In this document: positions 44,312-56,254 of the stretch, piece by piece
Position numbering within the stretch: the stretch's first letter is position 1
How the letters are laid out: every line of letters starts with the position of its first letter
Origin: Mantamonas sphyraenae STR306
Lineage: Eukaryota; Protista; CRuMs
Direction: 5' to 3'
Assembly (NCBI GenBank): GCA_026936335.1
Contig: JAPMXV010000029.1
Location: forward strand, 310,001 to 374,000
DNA: 64,000 bases
Notes under the pieces: generated by a model
What the model was told of the DNA's origin: nothing
Databases searched by the model: none
The model's input: only the letters and a program-made list of their open reading frames with translations
Made by a program: the position numbers and the translations under genes

Positions 44312-44530
44312 GTCAAGCGAGAAACTGCTATGCATGTGCGTGTGGGGTGGCTCGTTGTCGCCGAATGGACGGCCGGGTGATGGGTGATGTGGGTTTGGAT
44401 GGATGAGCTGGGTCGGTTGGCGCAGCGGCGCAGCAGGCGCATCCAGGTGGACCTCACCTTCATTCTTGGTTGAATTGGATCCATGTTTCATTTGTCAACA
44501 CATGCACTGACCGGTGCCCCCCTCCGAGCC

Positions 44531-45681
44531 TCAGTTGTCGGAGGAATCGGCAGAGGCGTTGCCAGAGACCGACGCCGACGCCGACGCACCTCCCTGCGGT
44601 CCGACAGTGACGTTGACCGTGGCCGAGTGGCGACGGCCGAATCGCATCTTGGGCAATTTCCAATCCGGTTTCCAGCTCTTTTTGGTGGTGGGCAGGCCCG
44701 AGGAGTTGCCGCCGAGCTTCATGGCCACCTCGTGGCCCGTGATGGTGCCGTTCTTCAGACCACAGATAAACCAGAAGAGGACAAGAGGCGAGACCACGAC
44801 AAAGATAGCAAACTGGCTGATGCTCATCATGTTGGCGAAAAGGTAGGCCCAGCTGTTCTGGCCGGCGGACCCGGCGGTGGTGATGTAGTCCAGGGCACAA
44901 ATGCGTGCGTCGGGACACAGCTGGGTGCCCAGACCCAGACCCTTGCATACAATCTGGCAACTGAGACTGGACTTGGGGAAGCAGGACGCACACGCTGGCG
45001 TGAGGGTGTTGTCGCCGACCGCACATTCGCGGCACACGCCAGACATGCACTGGCCTTGGTATTCCACAATACGGGCCGTGCCGTTGTCGTTAAACTCGGC
45101 GTGGCCACAAAACATAAGCGAGTTGACTCCCTTTTGCACGTTGGCGGCCGTCACCAGCGGGTCGCACGTGCGGCCCCACTTTGTTGCGTCACGCGCAGCA
45201 CACACGCCGTACGACGACGACTTGGGGTCAGAAATACAGTAAGCACCTGCAAGGTGGCGTGGATTATTTTCGTAGGGTGTGCCCACACATGTGTGAGCCA
45301 AAGGCGCATCTGGGGTCTCTGAAGGCACCAAACGGGCAAAGCCTCCCAACAACACACACACTTTCGCCCCTCACGTGCACGTACCAACGTCGCACTGGCA
45401 ATCTTTGTTCGGCAGCGTCGGATCACATTGTCTGCACTCCATGATGGTCTGGTTCTTGGTGTTGGGGATGTTCAGACATATGGGAAACGCGGGCTCAGTA
45501 CCTGTTGGCCAACGGGAAGGGGTGTCAGCGAGCCGTTATCGCACACACGCGCCCCTTGTCGTTTGCCCCCCCATCACCTACACAGGTTGGCCTTGCCCAG
45601 AGGTGGTTCCCCGCACTCGATGTACGCGGATACCCCAGCGACTCCGAGCAGGAGCACAAGCATCATCCACCGGACTCCCAT
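44531..45681 (-). CDS. Cys-rich type I membrane protein, paralog A (unrecognised family)
   Basis: Signal peptide MGVRWMMLVLLLGVAGVSA. Introns 45581-45502 and 45384-45247. Ectodomain ECRQCDPTLPNKDCQCDVGAYCISD...MFCG...EYQGQCMSGVCREC...CPDARIC...NSW, then a TM and cytosolic tail. Confidence 0.8.
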
Positions 45682-45725
45682 CGTTTCTTTTGCGGCCGCG
45701 GCCGCGCCAGCAACCCGAACCCGTC

Positions 45726-46701
45726 ATGATGCGCATTTTCCTCCTGGCGCTCGCCCTGGCTATTGTCTCCACGCATGCAGCAACCCGCTGCGATGTCAAC
45801 GGGGTTCCTGAGGCCAACAAGTGGTACGTGTTGTCGTCTGCACGCCACCCGAGCCTGACCATGCCCCGCCAACGTTTGCGCTCACACCGTCCCCGCGTAC
45901 ACACTCGCACACCACTTGCACACATAGCGCTGGCACTCCCTCCACACCATTCTGTGTGTTGACCTCGTCCGTCAACTCGACCACGTACGAGTGCATGCAG
46001 TGCGACCCGCGCGCTGCAAACAAAGACTGCGACTGCGCGGTTAACTTCTTTTGCGCCTCGGATATCAACGCTGTACGTTACCCCCTTCTCACCGTGCTTG
46101 TACACAGCCTGAGAATGCACTCGGGCTGGCCATAGCCGTGTGCATGAGACGTCCCGTGTCCACTGGCGGTGCCTTTCGCGCCGCCGCGTGAGTGCGTGCG
46201 TTGCAAAGTAGCTAACGTCTCTCGCGTGCGCCCCCCCCCTCCCTCCAACCACAGGAGAAGTTTGGCACGTGCGTGGCCAAGAACACCACCAAGTACGGCA
46301 CGTCGTGTGATCAGCGCCTGACGGCCGCCACTCTGAAGCGATCTGTCAATGACCGCATGTACTGTGGCGAAGTCGTTTACGGTGACAACGATCAGGCCCG
46401 CACAGTCGAGTGGTCCGGCGCCTGCATCAAGGGAGTGTGTGCAGCGTGTGCTCCGTCCACCTTTAGCGGCCTCGTCACTGCAAACTGCCCCGACGGCCGC
46501 ATCTGCATCGACGGTGCCGTCCGCTACGCTTCGGCTGGCTTCAACTCGTGGAGCTACTTTGCCCAGAACCCGATTGTGTTTTTCTCCTTTTGGAACACTG
46601 TCATCCTTGTGCCTATTGTATTCTTTGTCTTTGTCAACAAGTGCCGCAAGGGTGAGTTTGGCGGCTTCAACTGCTGTGGCAAGCGAGTTGGCGGAGCATA
46701 A
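45726..46701 (+). CDS. Cys-rich type I membrane protein, paralog B
   Basis: Signal peptide MMRIFLLALALAIVSTHA. Introns 45824-45927 and 46073-46254. ECMQCDPRAANKDCDCAVNFFCASD...MYCG...EWSGACIKGVCAAC...CPDGRIC...NSW, then a TM. Confidence 0.8.
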
Positions 46702-46756
46702 AGTCCTTCACAACACGACGTCGTGTCCTCATCCTTTGACCCCTGGTGTCCATGTC

Positions 46757-49493
46757 ATGCTCGCTGTCCCTTTGACCGAGCCTGTGCATGGCCTTGCTCC
46801 TGCTCCGATCCACCCAACGGAATCCCAGATGCAGGACGCGGTCGAAGCCCAGGAGGCGGCCGTCGAACGCGTCGCCATGAAGCTCAAACACGTCGAGGAT
46901 CTCGACCAGCGTACGTGTCCCCTTGTCTTGCCGCAGCATGTCCCTCAATCTCCATGCACTCACGCCGCGTGTGACCCTTCCAGTCGAGAGCATCCGCCTC
47001 GACTTTATGCGCCTCAAGGGTTCCGTCGATTCGCAGCTGAAAACCGCCGTCCAGTCCCAGATTGACGAGGTTGCTGCAGGCATGGCCAAGCTCCATCGCG
47101 CCCAGCAAGAGTCTATCAAGGTCCGCCAAAGGTTGGTCGTCCGAATGCGCTTGTTCCCGGCCACGATGTGACCAGCGTTGCGTTTGCCAGCGAACGCTTC
47201 TCCCTCCCGCTCACACGCATCTTGCGTGCCTCCGCAACTCACTCTGACCGCGGCCGTGCTCGCCACCTACCCGTGCGCCAGTTTTGCTGCTATCAACAAG
47301 GCTTGTCACGATTGCATGTCACTGTTGGAGAACTACGAGGTGATCAAGCGAGTCAACACTGTGCGCTCGAATCTGCTCAACACCAAAAAGGAGCTGGAAC
47401 GCATCACCAGCATCCCAGACACGGTGGCCGAGCTCCAGGCCGCCCTCGAGTCGGAAGACGCCGACCTTTTGTACATCCACCAGGAGATTCGCATCCTGCA
47501 ACAGCGACGGGACCTGGCTCTCGCCGCCGCTGAAGATCGCGACAAACCCGTCCTGCGCGACATGTTTTCCCAGGTCAAGGTGCTCAGCAACCAGTTGGAG
47601 CAGATGCTGTGGTCGTGCTTGCGCAACGTCATCGCACGTGCACAGCACACCCCGGGCCGGGTCGTCCGTGTCCTGCAGATCATTGAGCGCGAGGAGAGGT
47701 TTGACCAGTATGTACTGGAGCAGCAGGATGTCGCCTACAGGCAAGCTGGCAGTGCCGCCGCAGCTGCTGCCGCCGCCGTCGCCTCGCTCAGCCCTGCCAC
47801 CTCGGCCGAGCCGCTCGGACAGAGTTCGGGCGACTCTGTGTCGGCCACCGCGTCGTCCTCCTCCTCATCAACATCATCATCCACCGCCCAGGCTGCCCAG
47901 AGCACCATCTTTGAAAACCACCAGGACAAGCTAGTACAGACCAGCAAGGCGTCTCAGGATCTCAAGCATTTGAAAACACGGGCCTTGAAGATGGAGGCCT
48001 TCAACGTGATCCGCAGTGCCATCTCGGCTCGCTTTGAGGGCGAGTACGCAAACATGCAGACGCTGGACGAGGTGCTTCAAGCCAGCGAGTTTGTGCTGGA
48101 CGACCTCTCGCTCGTGTTGGACGTGGTGGCACCCTGCTTCCCGCCGCACTATGAAATCTTTATGTTCTACGCGTCGCAGTACCACCTGCGCCTGTACAAG
48201 CAACTCGAAAGCGTGGCTACGCACGATGCGGAAACCAGCGAAATTCTGGACACTGTCAACTGGATCAACGAGTATGAAACGCAGATCCGCCGCCTGGGCG
48301 CAGATGTCAACGAGCTGGCACCGCCTATGATGAACGCCGTCCAGAAGCTGCTGAGCAAGTACATCGAAAAGATCAACACAATGATGGTCGACTGGGCCAA
48401 CCGCATTCTGAAGGAAGAAATCCATGTGCAGGAACCGGAGGTCATCCACGGCCTGTTTCACACCATGGGCCACCGCGATCTCTTCCAGATGCTCAACTCG
48501 CAGATCGAGGCTGCTGTAAGTAACAGTGCAGGTGGCGAGGGTCGCTTCCTTAAGGACGTGGCCACCGAATGCCTGTGTGCAATCGAGATCTACCAGAACG
48601 GAATGCTGGAGCACCTGTACCGGGGTATTGACGACGAAGAGGGAATCAACGGGTTCAACTTTGGCATCACCATCGCCATTATCAACAAGAGCATGCAATG
48701 CGTGGACTATCTGAGCGAGTTTAGCGACAAGGTGTGCCTGTTGCTGCAGCCAGAGGTTGCGGACGAGTTTACGCAGTTTGTGGCGCCATACACACACAAT
48801 TTTGGCAAGATGGCCAAGGTTGCGCTTTCCAACATGGCAGACCAGATGTTTAGCGTGGTGGCAGAGGAGATGGACATGTTCTTCAACGTGGAGGCGTGGG
48901 TGAGCCAGAATCCGATGGGAACGGTGCTGGGCACGCTACGGGACTACTTTGACAACGTGTGCAAGGTGCGCATGGAGGAGATCTACACAAGGAAGCTGGC
49001 CGAGGAGTGCTTCAATAGGCTGATCCGAGGCTACCTGGGACCATTGTGGTTGCGCAAGCACGGCCTGGTAAACGGAGCCGAGGTGTGCACGCTGATCAAC
49101 AGTGACTACAATCTTATCAAAGAGGCCTTTGCAGAGTATCTGTCGCGCAAGAAGCTGGACAATTCCATCCAGATCATTGCCGAGGTGCAAAAGCTGTTTG
49201 CAGCCACCCCGGACGACTTGATCATCATCTACTCGGGTTTCCTGAAGGCCTATCCCGAGTGTACGGTGGAAATGATCGAGGTGATCCTGAATATGCGCAA
49301 TGACTGGCCAAAGGCTGCGTCTTCCGAGCTCTTGGGCGACTGCCGCAACCTGCGCGAGAAGCAACTGCAAGGCAAGACTGTCAAGCGAGGTGTGCTCCAC
49401 GAGATTGTGCAAATGATGGAGAAGGATCACGGATCACTGGGCAAGATCTCGCGTGTGCTGACGGTGCGAGGGCGTGCTGGACATCACGAATGA
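46757..49493 (+). CDS. EXOC3: Exocyst complex component Sec6/EXOC3
   Basis: KGSVDSQLKTAVQSQID, VVRVLQIIEREERFD, DDL..V...VAPCFPPHYEIF.FY...YH, DLFQMLNSQI, GTLRDYF. Two 5' introns. Start may instead be 46829. Confidence 0.92.
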
Positions 49494-49540
49494 GACATGA
49501 GATACATGTATTTTGCTTGCTTCCCACCTCAACTCTTCAG

Positions 49541-51556
49541 CTACAGCTCGTCCTTGCCATGGTCGGCCCTCTTTGGCTCTGGATGTTCGTCGACGTTGTT
49601 CTGTGTGGGTCCATGCTCCTTTTCCCAGGCACCGACGCGCTCGTAAAGATAGTCCAGAATCTGGCTCTGCTCCTCGGCGTGTCGCTCCTTCCACTTGCGA
49701 ATGAAAGCCTTGCTAGCCTTGCGGGCGACCTTTTTGATCTTCTTCAGGCTCTTGCTTGTGGCGCGCCTGAAATCAAAGCGGTGAACCTCCTCGGGCATGA
49801 CGCCGTCGATGGGGCGAGTGCTGTTGCTGTCGAGCTGTACGTTTGTTTCGATGGCATGGTCGCAGTAGCTGTGTACGTTCTTACGCGGACAAGGCTTGTA
49901 GTACGGGCCGTCCCTGTACTTCATTTCCCAGATTTTGCTGCAGATGGGCTTGTACACCAAGCAGAACTTCTGCGGCAGGTTTTCGTGCTCGCAGTCCCAA
50001 AACAGTTCGTTCTGTGCACGCATGGTGTGAGTACGGCCCTAAATGGGATGTGCCTGGGTAGGGACGACGGCACACAGTCGCTGTACATACCTTAAACTCG
50101 TTGTAGTTCCAGTAGTTGACAAAGTTTTCGCTCATGGCAATGCTTGTCTCGATGACATAGGTGGCGTGATAATAGTGGCCGCTCCAGAAGAGAATCTCGC
50201 CTGGGTTGAGGATAAAGTCGTAAAACGGCTTGGCGTGCTTGAGGGAAGGCGCAGTGGGGCGGTAGACGTCGTGGGCGCCGTCTGCGAGAGGTTCAGCAAG
50301 GTAGCCCGGGTACAGGCGCCAACGCTTGCGGCCGTACACCTGCACGCTGTACGCAAAGGTAGCCAGGGCGTCCTGGTGGTTCTCGATGCCTGCACGTCGT
50401 AGGCAAGAAGGGTAAGCAGAACGCACGGGAGGGGGAGAGATGGGGCTGGCTGCGGGCGACAAACTCACCCGAGTGCTTGGCTCCGATGTACAGGGCGCGC
50501 GCAGTCGTCTTTTTGTGAGGCTGGCTGTGGGATGGAGTGGTGGGTGGTGTAGGGAGTCGGAGAGAGTGGAGTGCAAGGTGTGAGGGTGTGTGCACGAGGC
50601 TGTTTGGCGAAAGGAAGCTTCACGAACCCTGTGCAAAGGACCATGTAGTCTGTGCAACGAAGAAACGGGGACATGGCACGCAAAAGGTGTGTTTGCACAT
50701 GTCGAGATGCATGAGGGGAGGCGGATAGAGCTTTGTGTGAGCGTGGGTGCCAAAGAAAACCAAAAGGTGGCCGGAGGAATAGGAAGAACACGTGTTGGCC
50801 AAACGCACCGTCAGCAAAGTAGTGGGGAATCTCCACGTCGTCCATGAGGCCTCCACTGTTGATACCCAGTTGGTGGGTGCCCATCTCACCGTAGGCCGGC
50901 ACACGAGCAGATGAATTGCGCATGTAGGCGAAAAAGTCTGGCAGGCGCACGTATTCGGTGCCGCCAAGGCCTTGGTCGCTTCCCCACTCCTTCTTGATCA
51001 TAGCGTCCGGAAACTGCTTCTCCAGCCACTCGGGCGTCCATTTGCCCACGGCAGGCCACTCGGACGCCACGCCCGTGATGATCACCGGCGTGCCCGTGGC
51101 CATGTACTTGAACACTGTGTGTGTGTGTGTGTGTGATGTGGCGCAAACACCCGGCGTCAGTCAAGCGCACACCTTTCCACACGTGCGACAAGCAAGTCAG
51201 GGCTTCCATGAGCCCAAGTTGAACTGGCGATAGGGCCATGATTGTGTACACTCACCAAACTCGTCGTAGGACAGCTTGTGGCGTCGGTCAATGGCCATGC
51301 GTCCGCTCTCCTCCCCGACCGGTTCGATGGGGATGGGACCCTCAAAGTCGGCATGGTTTGGGTCTGTGCGCGTGTCATACTTGGGGTCCTTGGGATCCGT
51401 GACAAACTTCCACTCGTTGGGCTGGAAGCCCTCGGCGTCCGGGCGGAACCCATCGGTTCCTTTGGGCATGTTGACAGGCGTCGAGTCCCTTTGGGCAAGC
51501 ACACCGTGCAACATCACGAGGAGCGCAAAGGCGACCGCGATTCGACGGGGCATCAT
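49541..51556 (-). CDS. Secretory-pathway JmjC/cupin 2OG-Fe(II) oxygenase with C-terminal KDEL
   Basis: Signal peptide (MMPRRIAVAFALLVMLHGVLA). JMJD4/6/8-like motifs IDRRHKLSYDEF, PVIITGVASEWPA..KWT, H-Q-D...GRKRWRLYP and LNPGEILF...YYHAT...ENF. Cys-rich C-terminus ending HGKDEL-stop. Several introns. Confidence 0.78.
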
Positions 51557-51673
51557 TGGAGCAGGTGCACGCAAGGAACGCATGAAAACGTGGGGTTTTT
51601 TGTTTTTTTGTTTCTCCACGTAGCGCAGCCACACCGGGCGTGGGTGTGGACCACACCATCCGCAATGCGGCGA

Positions 51674-53748
51674 CTACTCAGCCTTGAGGTGGTCGCCAGA
51701 GGTGGTGTTCTCAGCGGGGAGCTCCCACTCACCCAGCTCGCGAGTGAGCTCGTCGTCATCGAGCAGGTTGCGTCGCTTGTAGTTGACCCAGCACGGGGCG
51801 GCAGGACCGGCCACCATGTGGTTGTAGTCACACGGCGGGATGTCGCCGATGACCTCAAAGTCGTACAGACGCAGCAGGGTGCTCCAGATGGTCTTGATCT
51901 GCATGTAACCAAACTGTTCGCCCAGGCAACCGTGGCGGCCTGCGCCAAAGCCGATGAAGCTGAACGCGTTCTTCTTGTCCTCCTCGCGGCCCGGGCCAAA
52001 ACGGTGCGGGTCAAACTTGTCCGGGTTGGTGAAGAGTTCGGGCAGACGATGGGTCACCTTGGGGCTGACGGCCACAATGGTGCCCTCGGGAATGACGTAG
52101 TCCTTGTAGGTACGCTCCTGCTTGACGTAACGCATGAGCATAATGAGAGGAGGGTAAAGACGCAGGGTCTCCTTGACGGCGTTGTGCAGGTGCTTCATGT
52201 CGTGGAGTGCGTCGTACGTCAGATTGCCGCCGTACTCCTCAAGCACGGTCTTCTGCTCCTCAAGGATCTCGGGCAGGAATTCGCGGTTCTTGAACATCAG
52301 CATGCCGGTCCAGGTGGACGTGATCGAGCTGGTGTGCTGGCCTGCAAACAGACCGGCGACGAGCATGCCGGTGATTTCGTGCACCGTCAGCGGCGTGCCG
52401 TCCTTGTACGTGGCATCCATGAAGAACTGGAGCAGATCGTCGCCGACGTAGCCGCTCTTCTTGCGCTGTTCAATGACGCTCTCAAACAGCTTGCCCAGTT
52501 CGCGACGCGCGTTGTCGCGCTTGAATGCGCCTGGCATGGGCAAGTTCGGCAGGAAGACACCCACGGGGTTCAGTGCAGCCTCCAGATCGTGGTACAGGTC
52601 TGCAAACTTGCCGCGCTCCTGCATCGAGTCGCGGATTTCAGGGCCCAGCAGGCAGCGGGCGGCCGTAGAGATCGTCAGCTCGCTCAGCGCCTGGTGCAGG
52701 TCCATCTTGCCTCCTTTCGGGTGGCTGCAGAGGGTGTGGCGTGGGTCGCATGTGAGCACAGAGAGAGTGCATTCGTGGTGAGCGGGGTTGGGGCAAATGC
52801 ATGCATGCACAGCGTGCAGGGCCTGGGGGAACCGGCGTTGGGAAAAAATGCAGCGGGGCACAACTCACAAGCGCTCCTTGACAAACTGCTTGGTTTCCTC
52901 GATGATGATGGATGCATACGAGGCCAGCTTCTCCTTGGTCAGGCCGTTCTTGGTGATCTTCATCTGCTGGGTAAACACGTGCGGCTCGGCGTCGTACACG
53001 ATGCCCTGTAGTGTGGACGCAGGCGTGAAAAGATGCGGATGCGCACGGGGGGTGAGAACTCGTGCTGCGGCGAAAAAGAGCAAAGGCGGACAGACGTCCA
53101 CGGTTGTGTTCATCCCTCCTCCCTCGTCCAGAGCATATAGGGTGCACACATGTGCCTGGGCAAAGTAGCAGGGGCGAATGGGCAGCCACATACCTCGCCA
53201 AACACGGGCTTGACAAACTCGTACACCTCTTGGGGTGAAAGCTGGGAGTCGTTGGCGCGGAACAGCACGGCGTTGGCCTCGCTGCCACACAGGATGGTCA
53301 CCTCCTTGCCAAACAGCGTCACAGTAAAGATGTCACCCAGCTATACAGATGGACACGACGGACAACACGAAAGGAGCACAGCGTGCAGTTGTACGCAGGC
53401 GCGGGTGTCAGCTCATGGCGTGGCCAGCGAAAATTCTGCAAGGAAAGTTCACGAAGAAGAGGGCAAAGAGGTGTGCTGTGTTTGTGACGGACATGCAGGG
53501 CCAATGGGCACTTCACAGGCACTTACCTGCTTGCGCATGTTGGTGATCATGTTCACCGGCGACATGGCAAACGGAACGACGGAACCGAACCACGGCAACC
53601 AGGAGCGCACGTACGGCGGTGAGTTGGCCGGGCGCGGCCAGTACACGTACGCCAGGTAGATGAGACCCAGGGCAATCATGGCAGCCTGGTTCACGGTGAG
53701 GCCCGCAGCTTCGATTTGTGCGAGCACCTGATCCTTAAGGTTCTCCAT
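51674..53748 (-). CDS. CYP51: Sterol 14-alpha-demethylase (cytochrome P450 51)
   Basis: Motifs PVFGEGIVYD, AGQHTSS, KETLRLYPP and heme-binding FGAGRHGCLGE. N-terminal TM. Three introns. Confidence 0.95.
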
Positions 53749-53812
53749 GCTTTCGACTTTGCGGTGTCGCCGCTCGCGCTGACCAGCGCAAGACGTTTCG
53801 CCCATCAACAAC

Positions 53813-54724
53813 ATGCACCTTCCGCGGCAGCTCTTGGCACTTGCAGCGATGTTGTTTGTCATCCATGTCGTCATTGGCCAGAAGGACTGTGGCACAGGCG
53901 AGGGCGTCAACAAGGTGGGCAAACCCAACCTGTGCGAAAGCGAGGAAGGTCTGCCCCTGTGTGTCCTCAAACCCTCCAAGAACAATGACACCACCGACAG
54001 GGTCTACCATTGCTCTGCGTGCGACCCCACTCTGCCCAACAAAGACTGCCAATGCCCCGTGGCCTCGTACTGCGTCTCGGATCCTGCAAACGTGTGTTGC
54101 CAGCCCCCCTTTGCACAGCCAACGCCTTCCCTTGCCAATCCCACACACCACCACCCCGCCACGTATTTGCCGTGAACGCATGTCTCCATCCGCTCGGTAG
54201 CCCCCCGCGTGTGCCCCAGCCCCTTCCCTCATTGAGCCCCAAGACGACGGCTGCCGCCAAGCCGCCAACGGTTGGTTGCAGGCGTTTCGCCCCCTGGCCG
54301 CTCACACACTGCCTTGTCTCCACAGGAAAACTATGCCAGCTGCCAGCCACGTGACTATGCGGCGTATGGCAAGCCCTGTGTGCCCAACATTGTGCCGTCA
54401 GAGGAGCTGAAGAACGAAAAGATGTTCTGTGGCAAAGCCATCTTCAAGGACAAGAAACTGTCCGTCATTGAGTGGCAAGGAAGCTGCGTGCGTGGCGTCT
54501 GCCAAGAGTGCGCCGTCGCAGGTTTCCTCTCCTACCAGTCACCCATCTGCCCCGACATGCGAGAGTGTCTGCCGGCCGGCTACATTGTCAGCGGCACGGC
54601 GCGTGCCAACAGCTGGTCCAACCTTGCCGACAACGCCATTTCATTGCTCCAAGCCATTTGGTTCCTTGTGCCCGTGCCCATGCTCCTCACCATGGCCATC
54701 TGCTGGTGCAGCCGCTCGCGATGA
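53813..54724 (+). CDS. Cys-rich type I membrane protein, paralog C
   Basis: Signal peptide MHLPRQLLALAAMLFVIHVVIG. Intron 54092-54325. CSACDPTLPNKDCQCPVASYCVSD...MFCG...EWQGSCVRGVCQEC...CPDMREC...NSW, then a TM. Confidence 0.8.
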
Positions 54725-54730
54725 TGAGGC

Positions 54731-56254
54731 TCACGCAGGAATGTGTTCAATGCTCTCGGGCCGCACGTGCTCCGGATACTTCGGGTACACGCGCTTGTAC
54801 AGACTCATGCACACGGTGTCACTAAAATCCACTTTTCCGTCAAAGATGCAGCGCATGTGGCCGTGCTCGCCCACAGGGCACTTGATGTTGCCGATTCGCC
54901 CTCGCTTTGTCCACAGTGCCACGGGCTTGAAGTAGCGTACGTCGTCCACGTTCCAAAACATGAACCGCACCACCACGCTCTTCTTGTGCACGCGGAACGG
55001 ATAGCCCGTGAGCACCACCCGCTTCAGCACAATGCGGTCGGGGTCCGTCGACACCAGCGTCCCGCTCGCCACCAGGATCGGATCCCCCTCCTCTGGTTGC
55101 ACGTACACAAGTGCATTTGCAGGCGGATATTGGATCGGCGCATAGATAGTGGCCACTGAGAACCGATCGTGCAGCAGAAAGCGCTCAAACTTGTGCTTGT
55201 CCACGTTGGGCGAGTCTTCCGAGAAGATTGGCTTCGCTTCAATGCCGTTGTGGAAGCCGCAGCTGAAGAACAGTGTGTCCTTCGACTTGATGGGCTCTGT
55301 GTAGTTGTTTGTGCGCTTGATCTTAAAGTGAAGCGTGCTCACCTTGTTCTCGTGTTGCAGCTGGCCGCTCGCAATCACGGGCTCCTCCTCATTGAACTCC
55401 TCTGCAATGTCCACAGGCACGTCGCGCAGTTGAATGGTGATGTATGCCCCCGCAGGCACCGTTCCAAACTGTGCATCGCTCAGCACCGCCTTCTTTGTGT
55501 GCTCAAAGTTTTCAAACTGGAAAATCGTCCCGTACTCTACAGGCAGCGCCAGCTTCGGATCCCACTCCGAGTGCCGGAAGCTGTCCAGCTTGCGATACTT
55601 CTGGAACCGCTGCCTCGCTGCAATCTTCATCGGTGTGTCCACTTCGTCCGGCCATTGTGCATCCTCCGCCTCCCGCTGCATCATCAGCTCCCTGCGTGCC
55701 CTCTCCTCCTCTTCCTTGTCGTACTCCTCCGGCTCCACGTCATCTTCGTCATTGCTGTCCACCAGAGGCACCCACTCGGTACCGTCTGTGCCGTAGCCCA
55801 GTTCGCTCAACGCCGGCACACGGCTGCCAAATTCGGGCGCCTGTCCCTCGCCACCATTGCCGCTGCTACTGCTGATAGTGCCTCCGCGCACCTGAGCCCC
55901 ACGGGTGCGATCTGTGTTGTCCACTTCCATGTCGCGCTGCGACACGTAGTCCTCGTCATCCGCGTCGATGAACGCGTCCTCTTCGTACATCATGGGCGCA
56001 TCCGGGATCCACGCCGCCTGGTAGGCGTTGAAGCCCTTGGGAACAAGCTTTGTCACAGTGCGCTCGTTGTCGTACGCATCCGGCCACGTCTGCTCGTTCT
56101 CCAGAAGGTCTGGCGTGTTGAATGCCACTGGATCCTCGTGCTCGTCCTCTCCACACACATCCAACACCGCGCCTTCCTCAATGTCCTCCAGTTTCCACTT
56201 TCGCTTGCCTTCGTCCAGATCCAACTCGGCCGTGTTGCCGGAGGAGGAAGACGA

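Follow-up and report, generated by a model that had tools for sequence, protein, structure and literature searches.

Three spliced genes of an undescribed cysteine-rich ectodomain family in Mantamonas sphyraenae

The window analysed here, namely the whole 64,000-nucleotide stretch covering positions 310,001 to 374,000 of contig JAPMXV010000029.1 of Mantamonas sphyraenae STR306, is eukaryotic DNA of ~59% GC (guanine plus cytosine) with short introns. Mantamonas is placed in the CRuMs, a lineage which branches deeply, close to the base of Amorphea (PMC10492846). Between positions 44531 and 54724 of the window lie three spliced genes, here termed A, B and C, each of which encodes a signal peptide, a cysteine-rich ectodomain and a single C-terminal membrane anchor. 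Their products belong to a family which is larger than this locus and wider than this genus, and which yielded no match above threshold in the domain and structure searches described below.

Gene models and protein architecture

The models were built by reading the DNA and translating it exon by exon, and comprise the following elements, with the conserved cysteines (Cys) numbered from the N-terminus:

45582..45681, minus strand: gene A exon 1, with the ATG, the signal peptide MGVRWMMLVLLLGVAGVSA followed by YIEC, Cys1 and base 1 of the Cys2 codon; donor GTAGGT
45385..45501, minus strand: gene A exon 2, with Cys2-Cys7, a conserved N-x-T sequon and CDPTLPNKDCQC
44531..45246, minus strand: gene A exon 3, with Cys8-Cys16, a 4-Cys insert, NSW, the anchor at ~44756-44812, a ~75-residue tail and the stop codon
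45682..45725, unstranded: A/B spacer, the 44 base pairs (bp) between the start codons of A and B, holding GCGGCCGCGGCCGC
45726..45823, plus strand: gene B exon 1, with the ATG, the signal peptide MMRIFLLALALAIVSTHA followed by ATRC, Cys1 and 2 bases of the Cys2 codon; donor GTACGT
45928..46072, plus strand: gene B exon 2, with Cys2-Cys8 and CMQCDPRAANKDCDC, further on FFCASDINA
46255..46701, plus strand: gene B exon 3, with Cys9-Cys16, NSW, the anchor at ~46573-46629, a Cys-rich basic tail and the stop codon
53813..54091, plus strand: gene C exon 1, with the signal peptide and Cys1-Cys8, the N-terminal module being intronless
54326..54724, plus strand: gene C exon 2, with Cys9-Cys16, NSW, the anchor at ~54653-54709, a 4-residue tail and the stop codon

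All five introns of A, B and C run from GT to AG, three of them with the donor GTACGT, and measure 80-234 bases. Laid beside intronless paralogs and homologs derived from complementary DNA (cDNA), the exon pieces tile without gap or overlap at the junctions. In single pairwise comparisons, BLASTP aligned the C-terminal exons of A and B at 3e-30 with 35% identity, C with B at 6e-22, and the N-terminal modules at 1e-11. The C-terminal exons of all three can be aligned across the whole ectodomain part and the membrane anchor, and the N-terminal pieces are alignable as well. An earlier note on this DNA had proposed that spliced relatives occupy 44531-45681, 45726-46701 and 53813-54724, and exon translation, intron boundaries and pairwise similarity together bear this out.

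The scaffold shared by the three proteins consists of 16 ordered Cys with the motifs P-x-C, CxxC, (D)CxC, G-x-C, FCG, W-x-G-x-C-xx-G-x-C-xx-C and R-x-C and a membrane-proximal W. The ectodomains of B and C contain 16 Cys each and that of A contains 20, the extra four being carried by a 23-residue insert between the conserved Cys14 and Cys15, a loop which is variable among the copies of the family. As read from the sequence, without a dedicated predictor, the N-termini of A, B and C are hydrophobic with small residues at -3 and -1, and one strong hydrophobic stretch lies near each C-terminus (best 19-residue Kyte-Doolittle windows, 2.0-2.6). The combination of signal peptide, Cys scaffold and single C-terminal anchor, as first described for these genes, is complete in all three, and none of the scaffold motifs listed in that description is missing from any of them. 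Counted from the sequence, the tails beyond the anchor amount to ~75 residues in A, ~21 in B and 4 in C. The N-x-T sequon stands before Cys4 and recurs in the Mantamonas copies.

The 12 residues of CDPTLPNKDCQC match exactly between A and C, as had been noticed together with the Cys-containing insert of A, and yet 7 of the 12 codons differ synonymously. Identity of the protein over synonymous change of this extent points to selection on the protein and not to recent gene conversion.

A further observation concerns the first introns of A (45502-45581) and B (45824-45927), both of which interrupt one and the same conserved Cys codon at positions offset by a single base, as T/GT in A (phase 1) and as TG/C in B (phase 2). 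This looks like a one-base intron shift between the two paralogs, to judge from the predicted junctions.

Family members, distant relatives and the search for known folds

Queries in the searches reported below were single exons, or the intronless paralogs L004, L006 and L010 and the full-length homologs P0001 and P0002 as stand-ins. Profile searches of the whole M. sphyraenae genome (25,061,354 bases, 78 contigs, 59% GC; the FALCON assembly was published as 25.06 Mb, 78 contigs and 59.19% GC, PMC10492846) located 12 family loci, and not the three members that had been supposed. Three of these are the window trio, which sits mid-contig on the 751-kb contig C29; four lie on C44, three on C34, and one each on C25 and C3. 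Identity among the copies is 27-50%. Intron positions vary from copy to copy, some paralogs being intronless across the positions of the A, B and C junctions and the C3 copy forming a single open reading frame (ORF). In a quick tree, A, B and C fall in one subclade with the metagenomic P0002 and P0021, a clade of four unnamed hits, the C44 and C25 copies and P0001 of Mantamonas plastica; the C3 copy belongs to a different major clade, where its partner is P0010 of M. plastica.

Seven of the 12 are found no more than 30 kb from a contig end. The C44 cluster (C44:553300-559830; L013, L016) comprises four genes, with the TTAGGG repeats of the contig terminus 5.5-12 kb away, and the C34 cluster (C34:709979-728020) three genes at 12-30 kb from the contig end. 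The terminal residues CRG were found in one paralog only.

Beyond this genome, an exhaustive profile search was run since Pfam and a word-indexed protein search came up blank. The latter, a tool which relies on shared words, gave no match with A exon 3 and three matches with an 85-row profile. The exhaustive search matched 238 protein clusters at E<=1e-3 (E, expectation value), 102 at E<=1e-10 and 17 at E<=1e-30, headed by transcripts of M. plastica at 2.6e-59. Named sources include the amoebozoans Vermistella antarctica, Balamuthia mandrillaris and Pelomyxa schiedti, the metamonads Anaeramoeba flamelloides and Trimastix marina, and the cryptophyte Guillardia theta, a range which overturns the proposal that the family is lineage-specific. 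The named homologs are annotated as hypothetical or bear plainly spurious automatic names, and most of the others are unnamed metagenome proteins.

An alignment of 85 members contains 16 conserved Cys columns, ten of which are invariant in all rows, and a strong hydrophobic helix follows the ectodomain in 84 of the 85. Tails across the family have a median length of ~18 residues (range 0-164) and are usually basic near the membrane, often with Cys there. P0001, P0010 and P0093 are products of the M. plastica transcriptome, and since P0093 is 75% identical to A exon 2, an A-like gene is expressed in the sister species. The similarity of P0093 to A ends directly after SDPKS and is followed by V and unrelated residues; this break looks like a retained intron, which would lie at the intron position of B and C and not at that of the second intron of A.

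Two kinds of tail were encountered elsewhere in the family. Several members of a distant clade, in which FCG is replaced by KCA, have PPxY-like motifs in their cytoplasmic tails, and an SH3 domain is present in the tail of one other member (P0059, P0086, P0097, P0112 and P0021). These tails offer hints, from their motifs, of a coupling to ubiquitin ligases or signalling in those members; the tails of A, B and C contain neither PPxY nor SH3. In Guillardia theta, two near-identical family members of 382 residues lie in inverted orientation on JH993041.1 (313668-331223; L020), convergent around three unrelated genes, namely a cyclophilin, RNase PH and a small ORF. The arrangement is that of an inverted segmental duplication.

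The ectodomain had been described as unrecognised, and it stayed so in every search made here. The outcome named beforehand as fatal to novelty, namely a known domain matched confidently along the entire ectodomain, did not occur in these searches. Pfam gave no match above threshold for any exon, for eight paralog pieces or for the 85 homologs. The only recurrent sub-threshold family was Dickkopf_N (PF04706), which appeared at E<=5 in 14 of the 85 members (best 0.0022), and prokineticin families appeared below threshold in four. The best scores in the wider family were 8-16 bits, over profile positions 1-19 or 1-33, against a gathering cut-off of 25. Where the Dickkopf_N matches could be located, they scored 8-15 bits, spanned the first 17-33 of 51 profile positions, which is the stretch around Cys4-Cys8, and covered ~20-35 residues of the 160-residue ectodomain; in A, B and C themselves Pfam gave no match to Dickkopf_N. 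Against all sequences of the Protein Data Bank (PDB), the ectodomain profile returned a single row, Dickkopf-4, at E 5.4, and a profile which included the membrane helix returned membrane-helix noise only. In the literature we found no paper linking Dickkopf with Amoebozoa.

An AlphaFold2 model of a paralog reached a predicted local distance difference test score (pLDDT) of 86.9, and the ectodomain of P0002, which among full-length homologs comes closest to the trio, was modelled from a 94-row alignment with pLDDT 90.9 and a predicted template modelling (TM) score of 0.85, all five models scoring at least 89.8. In the P0002 model the N-terminal module is packed on the C-terminal module, and most of the chain consists of disulfide-pinned beta hairpins. 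The confidence of this model argues that the ectodomain folds as one compact unit and not as a row of separate beads. In the PDB, Foldseek gave no row below E 0.97 and TM-scores below 0.2, with generic Cys-rich repeats at the top. VIA-align, in a wide search and a second look, gave no structural match, and a shape search of the ESM Atlas gave none either (best TM 0.32). An Atlas feature search produced leads of 0.84 at most, the match at 0.84 being a basidiomycete cluster automatically named Dickkopf N-terminal. The prokineticin-family chain 1imt came out at E 6.3 and TM 0.18, and Dickkopf was retrieved by neither Foldseek nor VIA-align. An internal duplication relating the N- and C-terminal halves was considered and rejected (hhalign probability 16% over 10 columns).

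The A/B spacer and the neighbouring genes

The ATGs of A and B stand on opposite strands with exactly 44 bp between them (45682-45725), in agreement with what had been reported. From the stop codon of A to the next ATG on the same (minus) strand there are 39 bp (44491-44531), and 6 bp separate the stop codon of C from that of Tsr1, a convergent gene (54724-54731). With gaps of this size, untranslated regions must overlap adjacent genes, and because such gaps also flank these genes, the 44 bp between A and B are not exceptional locally. A second divergent pair within the family is formed by the two inner C44 genes, with ~474 bp between their ATGs. Guillardia is the sole other species with adjacent copies; its pair is convergent, and no head-to-head pair was seen there. 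Shared regulation of A and B is plausible on these distances, as it would be for any genes so near each other.

The spacer also holds GCGGCCGCGGCCGC, at 45692-45705, a palindromic sequence made of two overlapping NotI-type palindromes and the sole copy in the 25-Mb genome. It may be a candidate factor-binding site. That it represents a common promoter motif was considered and rejected, given the single genomic occurrence. A scan of the spacer for sigma-70 promoters and terminators was empty, this type of scan not being applicable to a eukaryote.

The genes around B and C were identified by Pfam:

47178-49493: exocyst Sec6
50465-51115: cupin/JmjC-like protein
51674-52861: cytochrome P450
54731-57094: ribosome biogenesis factor Tsr1, convergent with C

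The first three lie between B and C. None of the four has an evident link to the Cys-rich family.

Interpretation and comparison with known systems

The gene models and their paralogy, the common scaffold and architecture, the size and range of the family and the failure of known domains or folds to match it were all observed here. On this basis we consider it probable (roughly 0.7) that A, B and C are three intact and spliced genes out of a set of 12 in M. sphyraenae, belonging to an undescribed family which is patchily distributed over supergroups and whose products are type I receptors or adhesins of the secretory pathway. The signal peptide, the even number of Cys, the N-x-T sequon, the single anchor and the membrane-proximal Trp together suggest a type I secretory-pathway glycoprotein of the cell surface or of endocytic compartments. 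Under this interpretation, a cleavable signal peptide would lead the protein into the secretory pathway, where an ectodomain of ~160 residues, its 16 conserved Cys probably paired in eight disulfides, would fold into a compact globular unit and be N-glycosylated at a conserved loop. A single hydrophobic helix at the C-terminal end would anchor it, and beyond the helix would come a variable tail, short and basic and often with Cys.

The ectodomain would then most likely serve, on the cell surface or inside an endocytic compartment, as the rigid binding module of a receptor or adhesin. Its specificity would be varied through the Cys14-Cys15 loop, the site of the insert in A, and the diverse tails would link it to a range of partners in sorting or signalling. 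Freely varying tails on a rigid scaffold with a single variable loop fit a binding module which is reused with different intracellular couplings. As for the origin of the locus, a local duplication with inversion is the likeliest source of A and B, which have a very short upstream region in common, and C is a dispersed copy, three genes away.

Several considerations weigh against this interpretation, or against parts of it. The junctions and start codons of A, B and C are predictions from reading frame, splice consensus and co-linearity. In the quick tree, A, B and C do not come out as a clade of their own, and we claim no order of duplication; with A and B at only 35% identity, a duplication of the two need not have been recent. 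Localisation, disulfide bonding, N-glycosylation and binding function are what we infer from the proteins' features, and a receptor or adhesin role, though the most likely one, is the generic suggestion of the architecture alone. C and the C44 copies, whose tails comprise 4-8 residues, could bear a glycosylphosphatidylinositol anchor instead of a membrane helix. Finally, small disulfide-rich folds are hard for structure aligners, and the failure to find a match does not prove a new fold.

Four other explanations compete with the one we favour. The earlier note had taken the genes for a lineage-specific receptor or adhesin family of three, with A and B co-transcribed from a bidirectional promoter into a heteromeric complex, possibly together with C. 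The head-to-head arrangement with 44 bp between the ATGs, the genome-unique palindrome in the spacer and the divergent orientation of the inner C44 pair all lend themselves to such a view, but its lineage specificity and its three members are refuted by the 238 clusters and 12 loci, gaps of 39 and 6 bp are usual at this locus so that 44 bp alone is no sign of co-regulation, and the other divergent pair is ~474 bp apart, the Guillardia pair being convergent. We regard it as improbable, and about equally so the idea that the proteins are alternative coat proteins of a variable surface-coat family, diversified in loops and amplified near chromosome ends in the manner of the variant-specific surface proteins (VSPs) of Giardia or the coats of trypanosomes. 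The latter would account for the location of seven copies no further than 30 kb from contig ends, with TTAGGG repeats at 5.5-12 kb from four of these, for the very short basic tails, one ending in CRG, and for the variable Cys14-Cys15 loop. Yet the copies number just 12, are old and divergent (27-50% identity) and have orthologs retained between Mantamonas species; there are two CxxC motifs only and no Pfam match to VSPs, and the window trio lies in the middle of its 751-kb contig.

A distant membrane-anchored relative of Dickkopf, prokineticin and colipase, in which the N-terminal module is a true Dickkopf-type domain and functions accordingly, by binding receptors or lipid surfaces, is unlikely, although marginally less so than the two preceding accounts. 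Among sub-threshold Pfam matches, Dickkopf_N recurs most often (14 of 85, with prokineticin at four), Dickkopf-4 is the sole PDB sequence match of the ectodomain profile, and the Atlas feature match of 0.84 bears the same name. Set against this are scores of 8-16 bits under a cut-off of 25, coverage of ~20-35 of 160 residues, the absence of any such match in A, B and C, and structural searches in which Dickkopf was not retrieved and the prokineticin chain 1imt stood at E 6.3 and TM 0.18. That the genes are artefacts, whether chance ORFs or decaying pseudogenes stitched together by hand in GC-rich DNA, is scarcely credible. A mechanical ORF list does fragment A, B and C, and overlapping ORFs are many in such sequence; however, pairwise and profile similarities are significant, canonical introns restore a gap-free match to cDNA-derived homologs, divergence under the conserved motif is synonymous only, hundreds of homologs share the architecture, and the fold is predicted with confidence (pLDDT 86.9 and 90.9).

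A bolder form of the interpretation we favour holds that the ectodomain is a new disulfide-rich fold from early eukaryotes, retained by four or more supergroups (CRuMs, Amoebozoa, Metamonada and Cryptista among them) as a surface receptor module for the recognition of prey or substrate, with Mantamonas paralogs of different specificities. Most of the named source species are phagotrophs. We offer this as a tentative extension, one we would ourselves bet against.

Extracellular protein modules common to deep protist lineages are poorly catalogued. A fixed scaffold of 16 Cys, a confident model, no match in Pfam or the PDB and hundreds of homologs make this ectodomain a candidate for a new domain entry, and the family a tractable target for structure determination and ligand screening. 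We conclude that it is a real, undescribed and fairly widespread family of protist ectodomains, possibly with a new fold. The picture given by the earlier note changes accordingly in two respects, in that the family is not private to the Mantamonas lineage and counts 12 copies and not three; a complex of A and B is still a proposal drawn from their arrangement.

Several known systems invite comparison. The Cys4-Cys8 stretch of the family (C-x2-C ... D-C-x-C ... G-x-Y/F-C) resembles the first third of Dickkopf_N, in the group of Dickkopf_N, prokineticin and colipase. However, the family places 16 Cys in one compact unit with a membrane anchor, whereas Dickkopf is secreted, two-domain and animal-specific, and the structure searches showed no similarity to solved Dickkopf, prokineticin or colipase chains.

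Giardia VSPs and the CXXC-rich surface proteins of protists share with the family a type I topology, a Cys-rich ectodomain, the very short basic tail with a juxtamembrane Cys which is seen in several copies, and a partial clustering near chromosome ends. The family differs from VSPs in having two CxxC motifs only and a fixed ectodomain of 160 residues in place of long repeat arrays, in lacking a Pfam VSP match, in ending with CRG in one paralog only where VSPs have a CRGKA tail, and in its few, old copies which are orthologous across species. Furin-like, TNFR and EGF repeats (R-spondin Fu domains, 4-1BB, Pfs25) furnished the top Foldseek rows and likewise consist of disulfide-pinned beta hairpins, but the family shows no Pfam match to them, Foldseek TM-scores below 0.2 and, by hhalign, no internal repeat.

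Shisa-like proteins, which Pei and Grishin in 2012 are said to have described as single-pass cysteine-rich adaptors with PPxY tails, differ from the family in Cys pattern and domain size; no Shisa family was among the Pfam matches at E<=0.01, and A, B and C are without PPxY. In both, a Cys-rich ectodomain at the N-terminus precedes a single membrane helix, and the PPxY-like tail motifs of one distant family clade add to the resemblance.

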